Assembly (NCBI GenBank): GCA_002104945.1
Contig: MCFH01000018.1
Location: 434,001-498,000, forward strand
From: Piromyces finnis finn
Taxonomy: Eukaryota; Fungi; Neocallimastigomycota
DNA length: 64,000 nt
Direction: 5' to 3'
Within the stretch, counting starts at the first letter, position 1, and every line of letters starts with the position of its first letter. A program made the position numbers and the translations under genes. The notes beneath the pieces were generated by a model. That model saw only the letters and a list, made by a program, of their open reading frames with translations. It was not told the origin of the DNA and searched no databases. This document shows positions 3,601 to 8,750 of the stretch, piece by piece.

Positions 3601-6600
3601 TCTCTGAAAGAATATTCTAACTCAATAATTGATGAATGGTACACTGAATGGAAAAATGGTAATATTTCTATTGGTAAAAAGTCTGGTGTAATGCATGCTC
3701 TTCTTCATAGCTTCCCAAGAAATATTATAACAATTGATTCATCTCAAAAAATTACTAAAGAAAATAATATTGAAATTATTCAAATGATACAAAGTGCATT
3801 AGAAGAAATTTCTTTTTCCGACAGTATAACCTCCAGATTAAGTATCATTGCCTCATGGTGTTCCTTTTTTGAAAAGCAATTCAACAATATTGAAAATGCT
3901 GGACAAACAAAAACAGAACTTTTCCTCTTCGCTAAAGATTTATTTAATGAAAAAATGAGACATTCAGAAATACCATCTCTCTGTGCTAATAGTTTTATTG
4001 CCTACACCGGTTTAGTCGTAGCTTATTACAGAACAAATAATAGTTCATATCAATATATAAATGAATTAATTGATAATCTTCTTCAATATAGTAATCTTGA
4101 CTCATACATTCGAAATGAATTCAATAATAATGATGACATCCGATTTTCTATAATTATGTCAATTACCTTCCTCTATAACTATATTCATGCTACGGATGAA
4201 AGGAGAAAAAAGAATATATTTAATCAATTTAGATATTTAATTCAAAATATTTCTGATAGAAACAGCTGGCATGCCTTTGCCTTGACCTACGGTTTAGGTC
4301 ACATTATTAATAGTTTAATTCGTTCACTTTCAAATGAATCCCAAGATGCCGGAAAAAGTTTAAAACAAAGTGATCACTTTGACTATTTGAGAGAATATAT
4401 TGATAGTCTTAGCAATGGTTTTGAGAACAATCAACAAAAAGAATCCTTAGAATTATTTGGAAGAAAATTAGGATTTACAAAATTATTAGAATTAAATGAT
4501 ACCTCCCTCATTAGTAAAGAAGTTGTTTTAACTATCTTGGGAAAATGCTATAAAGAAATTGAAATGCTTTTTGAAGGTAAATCTATTAAATATATAGAAG
4601 GTGATTTCTGGATTTTAGCTTATGCTAGCCTCATGGACAGAGAAGAAGAAATAGAAGAAGAAAAAGAAGAAGAAGCCAACACTAGCAATAATAATGATTT
4701 ATTAAGTAAGATTGAACTTGTATTTAATCAAGCTTTAGCCTTTATTAGAACCAAGGATTCTCAAGAAAGTTTATATGTTCATCTTTTCTCCTCTTACTGT
4801 TTCTTCAAATTCCTGAAATTTATTCAAAAATTAAATGAAGATTCAGATGATAGTTTAATGGAAATCTTATCTTATCGCTCTCAGCTTTTAAGTTTAGTAC
4901 AATTATTCTCAGAGGATGGTATTGCTAATAATACAAAAATATCTAGTGTCTTTGGTACTATGGCCTTATTAGGTGTCAATATTATTGATTTAGAAAACGA
5001 TCGTAATGAAGTTATTCAAGAATACGCTGATAATGTAAAAGAAATATTAGAAAAATTAAAATCATTATATGGATCAGCTACAGGTAAAAGTTTAAAAGAT
5101 GCTAGATTATCTTTTATTCTTCAAGGTCGTCTTCTTCAATCTATTTACACCATCAATATGAATAAAAAGAAAACCACTGAAAATGAAACTAAATCAAACA
5201 ATAAAAATGAAGGAAATAATGAACCTAAGGATTATTCTAGATTCCCATTAAAAACAAGTTATCTTAGAGCTATATTTAATTATTTAAATAAATTATCTAA
5301 AGGTAAAAAAAAAAAAAAAAAAAAAAATATTATATAAATAAAACAATATATAAATATATAATGTAATTAAAAAAAAAGAAATAATGAATATTCACATTTA
5401 TATATATTTTTTAATTATTATTATTATTATTATAATTATTTTATAATAGAAACTGAACTTAATGAAAATCAATACAATATAATAAAAATATTATTAAAGT
5501 CATTAATAAGTATTGATATTTCATTACCAAGTGTTAATTGGAATCCATTACTTAGTCAATTAACATTAATGAACATTAATAGTAATGAAATAAAAATCTT
5601 ATGTTTAAAGTTTGCATTAAAACATGTTTATCTAAACCATAAATTGTCAAACTCTATGTTATTCTATTTATTAAATTCAATTACCTTTTTATTTTCAGAA
5701 AATAATATTCAACATCATAAAGATTTATTAGAATGGTTTATTAGTGAGGAAGGTCTCGGAAATCAACTTTCACTTGGTGGTTTACCTCCATTTGATAAAA
5801 TTGATGAAAAAACTACCGTCAATGTAAATAATGTAGTTATATCCTATACCAAGACTACAGAAATTGTTCAAGTATTGATTAATTCTATATATATTTGTGA
5901 AAATACTCAAAAGGTAATACCATATAAAAATATTTACTTATTTATTTATTTATTTATTTATTTATCTATTTATTTATTTATTTATTTATCTATTTATCTA
6001 TTTATTTATAATATGATAATAATATATTTATCTTTTTAATTTTTTTTTTTTTTTTTTATTTTTGAAATTCCAGAATTTAGAAAAGCTTATAGAAGTTTTA
6101 GCCAAACATTTATTATCCATTCCATTAATTGAGAATGAATCATCAAATTCAAACATTGAAAAAGTTAAACAAGAAATATTAAACATTTTAAAGAATATTT
6201 ATGAAAATATTTCCATTTTAGATGATATAAATAATATGAAGATTATTCGATTAATCTTTTCATGTTATGTTTGTGATCCAGATCGTTTGATGGAATTAAT
6301 TAGTTTAACCAACGAAAAAGATTACCTTGGAAAATATGAAAATAATAATATTACTAATGACCTGGAATTACAAAAATTAAATATTGGTATTAGTCAGTTA
6401 GTTGATATGGAATGTGATTCAAATTATCCAAAATCATTAAAACAAAATATTAGACGTAGTATTAAATATAATAAGGAAGAAGTAACCAAAAAGACGTTAA
6501 TTGAAGTATTCACTATCATGGAAAATAAAAGAGTGGAAGACAAAATTAAAAAAGATATTTTCCTCATGAATATTAGTTGTATTTTCCAAAATATTGAACA

Positions 6601-7189
6601 TCTTTTAAGTATTAAACATCAAAGTTTAGTTGATCAAGATAAATTACAATGGCTCCAAGAAATTCTTGATCTTTCCATATTATATCGTAATGAAAAAGAA
6701 AGTACTTTTTACTTGAGAAAAATAATTTTCGGTATAATGAACATTTTATGGACCAAAACACCAGAAAAGAGTGAAAAACAAGAAGACAACTTTGAAAATA
6801 TTATGAATCTCTATAAAAAACTTAAAGAAGAAAACAATAATTTAGTTGTTGATTTGGACGATTTTGACTTTTTATTTAAATCGGATGTGAATAAGGAAAA
6901 ACAAGAAGCTGTAAGTTTCCCATTTATATATATAATACAATATAATATTCATAAATATACCACCATTAAATTTATTTCTTTTTAATTATGATTCTATGAC
7001 TATATTATTAATTAATGGTTTTATTTTAATAAAAAGATATGTAAAAGATTATTTAGCATTATGAAACACTTTTCAGAATCCAATGATGAAATGTCAGATG
7101 AAGGTTACTACGAACTTAAATTTGGATTAATTCGCTATCATAATAAAAGTAACTTTATTCAATCCCACCTTATTGAATTAAGTCAATAA
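685..7189 (+). CDS. FOCAD: Focadhesin/RST1-like large ARM-repeat protein (DUF3730-type), 7 exons: ~685-1983, 2137-2726, 2896-3053, 3188-5302, 5450-5913, 6074-6910, 7037-7189
   Basis: Five track ORFs join in frame through GT..AG introns (phases checked by eye). The motifs 'LRSLFEIWKRQPKTWNQL', 'DVCDHNIKECGQE' and 'LPSVNWNPLL' resemble focadhesin/RST1 motifs (LxxLWxxQ..., DxC, LPPVNW). Family call is from recalled motifs, not a database search. Confidence 0.7.
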
Positions 7190-7548: not shown

Positions 7549-8750
7549 TTATATGGTTAAGTCATTTTGTCTTTCCAATAAATATGTTTGAAGTTCCAAT
7601 AACTGTAACATTTGTTCTTGTGATAATTCTGATATTGGTTCTTTTGTAACAAGGTTTTCTGAATAGAGATTGGAATGTAATGAAGAATATAATTTTTTTT
7701 CTGATATAATTTCTTGCATGTTTTGTTGTTGTTGTTGTCTAACGGTAGATACGTCAAGATTTGTATCACTTGCAACATTATTAATGTAATCTCCTTCACT
7801 AAGGAGATTATTAAGGATTTTATTAATACTACCATTTGCAATATCTGACACGTTATTCTCTGGCAGAAGAGTGTCCGCTGCAGGGAATTCTCATTGGTGA
7901 GCGCTGCGGGCTCGCCAACACTCGACTGTGGAGATATTGTGTCGATATTGAAAATAAGAGTATTAATGTTGTCATTACCTTTTGGGATAGTATTTATATT
8001 GGTTAATGGGATAGAATGAATATCTTCATATAATGGAGATGCAAGTGAAATATCTGAAATACTTTCGGGTGAATTTAAATTAGAAATAAAATTATTTTCG
8101 TTATCATTATTTGCAATAGAATTTATATTAGTTGATGGTATAGATCGAATATCTTCATATAATGGAGATGCAAGAGAAATATCTGAAATACTTTCAGGAG
8201 AATTTATATCAAAAGTGAAATTATTTCTAGGAGATAAAGAATTGACATTATTATTGGGAAGAAGGTCATTTGGAATATGAAATTGTTCTATTGAATTAAT
8301 TTTTGAATTATTATATATAGTATTCATTTGACTTAATATTTGAGTTAAATGTTGAACTTGTAATTTTAAATTTGCATTTTCATCTTTTAATTTTTTATTT
8401 TCTTTATCTATTTTTTCTTTATGTTTTATTAATTCTACATTCATTTTTTCCAATGATTCAATATACTTCTTCTTTTTTTGCCTTGAGGCATTAGCCGAGG
8501 CCCTATTTCGTATTATTCTAATATGAATTAAAAAATAAGCTATTTAATAATTATTCAAAAATAATATTTTTTTATCACTAACATTTTACTATAATTATTA
8601 ATATATTATATTGTATTGTATTATATTGGATTATATATACCTTTCTCTCCTTTTTCTTTCACGTTCCAATTCCTTGTTAATTTTTTCTTCTTCATTTATA
8701 TTAACTTGTTCTTTTAGTATAGGTTTTGGTAATATATTTAAAGTGCTCAT
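7549..8750 (-). CDS. HAC1: HAC1/XBP1-like bZIP transcription factor of the unfolded protein response. Exon 1 8750-8641, exon 2 from 8517. Unspliced form ~356 aa (stop 7557); Ire1-spliced form ~350 aa (stop 7549)
   Basis: Reconstructed N-terminus MSTLNILPKP...ERKRRERIIRNRASANASRQKKKKYIESLEKMNVEL...LKDENANLKLQVQHLTQIL is a bZIP basic region plus leucine zipper. Two overlapping open frames at the 3' end are joined by removing a 26-nt segment flanked by CNG|CAGC loops. Confidence 0.9.
7881..7906 (-). other. Unconventional 26-nt Ire1-spliced intron
   Basis: Minus strand reads GAGC-CCG|CAGC-GCTC accaatgagaat TCC-CTG|CAGC-GGA. This gives two 7-nt CNG|CAGC loops on stems whose cut sites are exactly 26 nt apart, closed by a GAGTGT/ACACTC base stem. 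Removal shifts translation into the 7549-ending frame (...EPAADTLLPENNVSDIANG...). Confidence 0.9.

Follow-up and report, generated by a model that had tools for sequence, protein, structure and literature searches.

The HAC1/XBP1 orthologue of Piromyces finnis, which lies on the minus strand of the 64,000-nucleotide stretch of DNA analysed here (the window), contains a 26-nt IRE1-type intron followed by approximately 320 nt that are dual-coding. Both the frame read after excision of this intron (the spliced frame, S) and the frame read when it is retained (the unspliced frame, U) stay open over this distance, and U is kept free of stops by selection throughout Neocallimastigomycota, through context-specific codon choice. 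We conclude that a dual-coding, XBP1-like organisation is real and selected and that, in fungi, it has apparently gone undescribed.

The textbook view contrasts yeast HAC1, whose unspliced message is translationally blocked and targeted through its 3' UTR, with animal XBP1 and plant bZIP60, in which the unspliced form is translated, encodes a hydrophobic segment and stalls. A whole fungal phylum with a selected, open and XBP1-like unspliced frame departs from the yeast model. The locus is also a clear illustration of how, in AT-rich DNA, the other frame of an acidic activation domain can yield both a hydrophobic segment and a Trp-rich tail at no cost. No description of an XBP1u-type arrangement in any fungus was found in the searchable literature, in agreement with the original prediction, which knew of none; a literature search surfaced no paper joining Neocallimastigomycota with HAC1 or IRE1, and a 2026 review of fungal Ire1/Hac1 mentions neither hydrophobic segments nor pausing.

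The open reading frame at this locus is that of an annotated 356-aa P. finnis bZIP protein, BCR36DRAFT_404120 (100% identity). Pfam PF00170, the bZIP domain, is recorded on this protein and on its homologues, the basic region conforms to the HAC1/XBP1 type (RERIIRNRASANASRQKKK), and a family profile searched against 1.84 billion proteins also picks up the named HAC1 proteins of Yarrowia and Sugiyamaella. All parts of the gene are on the minus strand. Exon 1 (8641..8750), assigned from its match to the annotated protein, begins with the ATG at 8750..8748 and holds 36 codons plus 2 nt; it is followed by a conventional GT..AG intron of 123 nt within the bZIP basic region (8518..8640), which is skipped by RNA contigs of runs X1 and X3 that join 8641 to 8517. 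The part of exon 2 that precedes the IRE1 5' cut (7907..8517), as judged from its translation and from the PF00170 match, completes the bZIP domain and supplies a low-complexity linker. The unspliced mRNA is a single 356-codon ORF that runs without a stop through the unconventional 26-nt intron (7881..7906), whereas excision of that intron shifts translation into a frame whose product, 350 codons long, has a conserved acidic domain at its C-terminus. Local GC content is 20-38%.

Two features of the surroundings may be recorded here. The linker contains a 129-nt tandem duplication (7962..8219, minus strand; two copies, 81% identical), an insertion specific to P. finnis in the alignment, which adds approximately 43 residues (the NSPESISDISLASPLYEDI.. 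unit) and is absent from every other orthologue. On the plus strand, a convergent neighbour gene of at least two exons occupies 5569-7189 (ORFs 5569-6039, 6062-6985 and 7061-7189), its end lying approximately 360 nt away from the HAC1 stop.

The unconventional intron (7906..7881) is bounded by the cut sites CCG/CAGC and CUG/CAGC (the slash marks the cut), and a 54-nt local fold places these in adjacent hairpins with 7-nt loops, CCGCAGC and CUGCAGC, one cut site in each. Paired cut-site hairpins at this position are, in the modelled fold, the signature of an IRE1 substrate; the twin hairpins were not reproduced in an 81-nt MFE fold of the same region, and the 3' hairpin taken alone is weak (-3.2 kcal/mol, z = 0.24). 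The intron sequence is nearly invariant among 15 Neocallimastigomycota orthologues. In transcripts of a close relative the 26-nt intron is removed: a metatranscriptome contig (L010) matches the unspliced contig L006, from a Neocallimastix relative, except that precisely 26 nt are missing between the predicted sites, and a public protein (P0023), whose contig is L010, reads through the junction in the predicted spliced frame. P. finnis RNA, as represented by Logan contigs from four runs, contains the unspliced form only, which fits an unstressed culture and, because contig assembly loses rare variants, is weak evidence against splicing. The treatment of the gene as HAC1 in the original prediction is supported: it is a HAC1/XBP1 orthologue, its intron is of XBP1-like size, and exact excision is seen in a relative. 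A single-nucleotide difference was also noted at window position 7750, where run X1 has C and the window T on the plus strand; on the gene strand this is a GTA to GTG change, silent in S and Tyr to Cys in U, of a type that accumulates freely in U.

Following the intron, U continues for 107 codons, from 7880 to a TAA at 7559..7557 (7557..7880, minus strand), and S runs for 109 codons after the junction to a TAA at 7551..7549 (7549..7878, minus strand), encoding the conserved acidic C-terminal domain with an LLE heptad repeat at its end, as in the spliced-form protein of the relative. The third frame over the same overlap contains 14 stops, and the initial observation of about 108 codons open in both frames is therefore accurate. 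DNA was gathered for 15 orthologues spanning Neocallimastigomycota, and in 13 of these U is open for approximately 100 codons, the third frame having 10-14 stops. In most orthologues the U stop falls 3-8 nt from the S stop.

The number of stops to be expected in U was conditioned on each S protein and on codon usage, taken either from P. finnis (7,891 codons from long ORFs within the window) or from the upstream part of the same gene. For P. finnis the expectation is 6.0-7.3 stops, with P(open) at 2e-4 to 2e-5; across species, 4-7 stops are expected, with P(open) between 2e-5 and 3e-3 for each under either codon-usage model. The same +1 frame of the upstream part, used as a control, contains 17 stops in P. 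finnis against 14-19 expected, and 12-19 across the orthologues, again as expected. Because stops are few relative to the S-conditioned expectation while the upstream control is at expectation, U is open far beyond chance. The codons involved are specific to context: conserved Leu residues that precede a purine-starting codon are written TTA in the leucine zipper, each giving a +1 stop, and CTT or TTG/CTG in the overlap, while Leu before a pyrimidine retains TTA in overlap and zipper alike. A tree-based count gave 9 stop-creating substitutions in the overlap versus 25.9 expected at control rates (P = 1e-4). Dual-coding selection, which had been proposed from the P. finnis sequence, is upheld by this deficit, by the codon switching and by the stop depletion in 13 of the 15 orthologues.

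The two exceptions are lineages in which U is truncated. In the lineage of the protein P0014 (locus L008) a stop occurs at codon 72, and in L013 (protein P0022) there are three stops from codon 49 onwards, such that its hydrophobic segment could not exit the ribosome ahead of termination. The metatranscriptome contigs of the former lineage (L008 and L009) carry, besides the U stop at codon 72, an in-frame stop within the bZIP zipper (KD-stop-NQ), for which L008 was left out of the rate analysis below; P0014, from the same lineage, has an intact bZIP, and the two contigs may derive from a pseudogene or another allele, or may be misassembled.

The wobble position of S is the second position of U, and constraint on U residues should lower the rate of S-synonymous change. 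The rate per site of changes synonymous in S and nonsynonymous in U was 0.110 in the upstream synonymous control, 0.101 over the overlap as a whole, 0.075 in its hydrophobic part, 0.105 in the linker, and 0.139 in the tail. Overall, the amino acids of U are barely constrained. With a rate of 0.139 versus 0.110 in the control, the tail evolves neutrally in U, as though only S and the avoidance of stops in U counted.

Translation of U reveals a hydrophobic stretch of 35 residues (7740..7844, minus strand), encoded in the unspliced frame only, with its maximum approximately 60 residues ahead of the U stop. In P. finnis the highest 19-residue Kyte-Doolittle value is 2.03, compared with 1.3-1.9 among its relatives. 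Selection for this hydrophobicity was considered and rejected. When S codons were resampled synonymously, conditioned exactly on the absence of U stops, the resulting U peptides had 19-residue maxima of 1.8-2.4 and P(sim >= obs) ranged from 0.5 to 0.997, observed values lying at or below the simulated ones, and lower in most orthologues. The hydrophobicity of U follows from the composition of the S domain, in which Asn, Asp, Ile and Leu are abundant and written with codons that end in T; in U these Ts fall in the middle of the codon. The HR2-like segment put forward originally is thus present, at 7844..7740, but does not exceed what is expected of a by-product under synonymous resampling. Such a segment could serve in targeting without ever having been under selection to be hydrophobic; in paused human XBP1u, HR2 lies approximately 52 residues from the peptidyl transferase centre (PMC6624018).

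The end of U reads W-NFKHIY-W-K-D-K-M-T-stop (7598..7557, minus strand), with Trp codons at 7598..7596 and 7577..7575, and the original prediction had likened its W-x6-W-K-x-x-M-x-stop pattern to the arrest peptide of human XBP1u. The letters are as quoted; the kinship is called into question by the LLE repeat of S, the neutrality of the tail, and the poor match at optimal human positions. Codon alignment shows that both Trp codons are the +1 reading of Leu-Leu-Glu (TTA-TTG-GAA, with the second Leu as TTG or CTG before GAA) in S, and that this motif repeats seven codons apart within the conserved S terminus (consensus LLQLLEQQVxLLERQNELT). The W-x6-W spacing arises because a heptad repeat in S is read one frame over, and no link to XBP1u is needed. 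Likewise, GAA-AGA and AAT-G/C, the commonest codons for the residues concerned, account for the Lys that follows the second Trp and for the Met/Ile. Conservation of the pattern within Neocallimastigomycota, proposed as a check, gave a divided outcome: the W-x6-W-K-x-x-[MI]-x-stop spacing is exact in 16 of 22 homologues, but one clade ends in YI[KR]DKKR and has no second Trp, and the two truncated lineages are unable to translate the tail yet keep TTG-GAA (in L013 at both sites, despite U stops before the tail). At the two Leu-before-Glu sites, TTG or CTG accounts for all 27 codons, although CTT and CTC make up approximately 78% of stop-avoiding Leu codons by genome usage, and three switches to CTG, a 1% codon, each preserve Trp. 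Retention of these Trp codons is possibly the sole sign of U-specific selection in the tail; phylogenetic inertia or the single-step route from TTA to TTG could also explain it.

Comparison with the human peptide was made at individual positions. The human XBP1u positions at which the wild-type residue is optimal are Y241, P244, W249-H252, W256 and P258, W249 and W256 framing a turn in the exit tunnel, whereas K257 and M260 are among the sub-optimal positions (PMC6624018, from which the human residues were taken, there being no vertebrate XBP1u among the best 150 profile matches). The fungal tails match 2 of these 8 positions, W249 and W256, and differ at Y241, P244, G250, R251, H252 and P258, both human Pro positions being N/K and D/H in the fungi. 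The position of human L246, reported to be essential in an alanine scan and conserved to Drosophila, is S, F or Y. The hydrophobic segment and the W-x6-W-K tail are automatic products of the S domain read out of frame, which may nevertheless be exploited, and the resemblance to a sequence-specific arrest peptide is probably coincidental.

Known systems show both similarities to and differences from this arrangement. Metazoan XBP1, whose unspliced product XBP1u combines the hydrophobic region HR2 with a C-terminal arrest peptide (Shanmuganathan 2019, PMC6624018; reportedly also Yanagitani 2009 and 2011), has, like P. finnis HAC1, a 26-nt IRE1 intron and a long overlapping unspliced ORF. The codon phase at both cut sites, with ..A-A-L..L-Q.. 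in the unspliced form, is one that we take to be the same in human XBP1. As in P. finnis, the XBP1u ORF encodes, 50-60 residues ahead of its end, a moderately hydrophobic segment that the frameshift eliminates, and two Trp seven apart are followed by Lys at the same distance to the stop. The P. finnis system differs from XBP1u in that 6 of the 8 optimal arrest positions are unmatched and in that its tail lacks constraint on U amino acids. Furthermore, the ends of U and S lie within 8 nt of each other, unlike those of XBP1, for which XBP1s runs far past the XBP1u stop. The human XBP1 intron is 26 nt in length (PMC11077094).

Plant bZIP60u resembles P. finnis in encoding a hydrophobic segment in the unspliced frame only, and differs in having an intron of 23 nt rather than 26 nt; its activation domain is N-terminal (in Arabidopsis) and its hydrophobic segment is a true membrane anchor (PMC11077094). 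The combination of stalling and a hydrophobic segment is established in animals and, since 2024, in plants, where stalling was demonstrated in wheat-germ extract and where the arrest sequences are unrelated, differing among plant lineages as well as from XBP1u (PMC11077094). Because plant stalling sequences vary in this way, a non-homologous pause element would be a realistic model for P. finnis.

In Saccharomyces cerevisiae, HAC1 has a 252-nt intron, a translation-blocking pairing between 5' UTR and intron, and a bipartite targeting element in the 3' UTR. It shares with the P. finnis gene an orthologous bZIP, IRE1 cuts at CNG/CNGN loops and a new activating C-terminus generated by splicing. 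The P. finnis gene, in contrast, has a 26-nt intron that leaves no room for a long-range translation block, and a long, selected unspliced ORF. The yeast mechanism for unspliced mRNA differs from the animal one (PMC4891664), and that of P. finnis is, by these comparisons, likely to be co-translational and not driven by the 3' UTR.

Co-translational targeting via the U hydrophobic segment is a plausible mechanism and the most economical. The unspliced mRNA would be translated to its end, and the hydrophobic segment, located some 60 residues before the U stop, would emerge before the ribosome has left the mRNA. The segment could then tether the complex of ribosome, nascent chain and mRNA to the ER, probably via SRP, and tethering would put the twin hairpins beside IRE1, as in XBP1u and plant bZIP60u. 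For this mechanism as a whole, that is, a HAC1 organised like animal XBP1 with co-translational ER targeting of its unspliced mRNA, we regard the case for and against as about evenly balanced.

Several other explanations of the open frame have to be weighed against it. That U is open merely through chance or composition, free of selection, is scarcely credible: an Asn/Asp/Ile-rich domain with T-ending codons does yield few stops in part of the region when read one base out, but conditioning on the S protein and codon usage still leaves P(open) at 2e-5 to 3e-3 for each species, the upstream control is at expectation, and stop-creating substitutions are depleted (P = 1e-4). Alternatively, the sole benefit of an open U may be that ribosomes translating the unspliced mRNA stop at its usual 3' end, the peptide itself having no role; the mRNA reservoir would thereby be spared a 3' UTR longer by 300 nt, and nonsense-mediated or no-go decay. 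Strong selection against stops coupled with near-neutral change of U amino acids (0.139 in the tail versus 0.110 in the control) is in keeping with such a role, as are the proximity of the two stops (3-8 nt in most orthologues) and hydrophobicity that is a by-product. We nevertheless consider termination by itself an unlikely explanation, given the modestly lower synonymous rate in the hydrophobic part (0.075 versus 0.110), the use of TTG/CTG for 27 of 27 Trp-generating Leu codons though CTT/CTC are commoner among those allowed, and the fact that the same architecture performs targeting in animals and plants.

The unspliced protein might also be functional in its own right, either as a negative regulator or degradation adaptor like pXBP1(U) or as a membrane-tethered inactive factor like bZIP60u. 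Its product retains the whole bZIP domain and a hydrophobic C-terminal region, and both precedents are known (PMC5636610; PMC4891664), but the amino acids of the U-specific part are only weakly constrained and much of that part has been lost in two lineages. We consider this role somewhat less probable still than that of termination. We are more doubtful again that the Trp-framed tail is a working arrest element, whether homologous to that of XBP1u or convergent, in which case pausing-assisted SRP self-targeting would operate in early-diverging fungi and would go back to the ancestor of opisthokonts, possibly of eukaryotes, with the yeast 3' UTR mechanism a later replacement. The narrower proposal of a true XBP1u-type arrest peptide, homologous to the animal one and implying that pausing self-targeting predates the animal-fungal split, we hold to be the more improbable of the two. 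It could draw on the exact spacing in 16 of 22 homologues, on the unbroken use of TTG/CTG (27 of 27 Leu codons, including the three Trp-keeping switches to very rare CTG), and on the turn that W249 and W256 frame in the human peptide. The heptad of S, however, explains the spacing, the tail is neutral in U, and 2 of 8 optimal human positions are matched, that of L246 being S, F or Y; in addition, one clade has no second Trp, the two truncated lineages still have TTG-GAA, and the motif is absent from a chytrid, from Endogone and from 147 outgroup matches.

An origin of the arrest peptide before the animal-fungal split, as first suggested, accordingly finds no support in the outgroups. The pattern W-x6-W-[KR]-x-x-[MIL]-x-end, or looser forms of it, occurs in none of the 147 bZIP matches from outside Neocallimastigomycota listed by the profile search of 1.84 billion proteins, among which are a chytrid and recognised HAC1 proteins. 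Beyond the bZIP domain, only Neocallimastigomycota match among the profile matches listed. A PDB sequence search with the 127 U-specific residues returned nothing even at E = 10, and an ESM Atlas search with the U tail gave a best score of 0.57 and no usable lead.

The layout itself, as distinct from the tail motif, may extend further. In the mature mRNA of the chytrid Clydaea vesicula (24% GC; L017, approximately 1845-2250), the frame of the splice region and the frame of the acidic terminus both stay open for approximately 110 codons, against 23 stops in the third frame. Its U has a hydrophobic maximum of 2.14 and no Trp-framed tail, and the depletion of stops, calculated with borrowed codon usage, is no more than suggestive (0 observed versus 2.6 expected; P = 0.03). 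The public gene model of Clydaea links the two frames by a 26-nt GT..AG mini-intron, the spliceosomal nature of which is unlikely. In Endogone, a member of Mucoromycota, the U tail is 121 residues long, its hydrophobic stretch is weaker and the tail motif is lacking. Canonical CNG/CNGN pairs were sought in Clydaea, Chytridium lagenaria and Endogone, and none were placed. Because the layout is apparently common to a chytrid and perhaps to a Mucoromycota species, the comparison suggests an ancient origin for the XBP1-like mode, from which the yeast mode would be a departure.

One further XBP1/HAC1-like gene was encountered on a Logan contig (L019, 909-932), which has a 23-nt intron with flanks like those of Neocallimastigomycota (GGCGAGCC.G ... 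CCCTG/CAG) and in which a hydrophobic U tail of 136 residues stands against an S tail of 18 residues.
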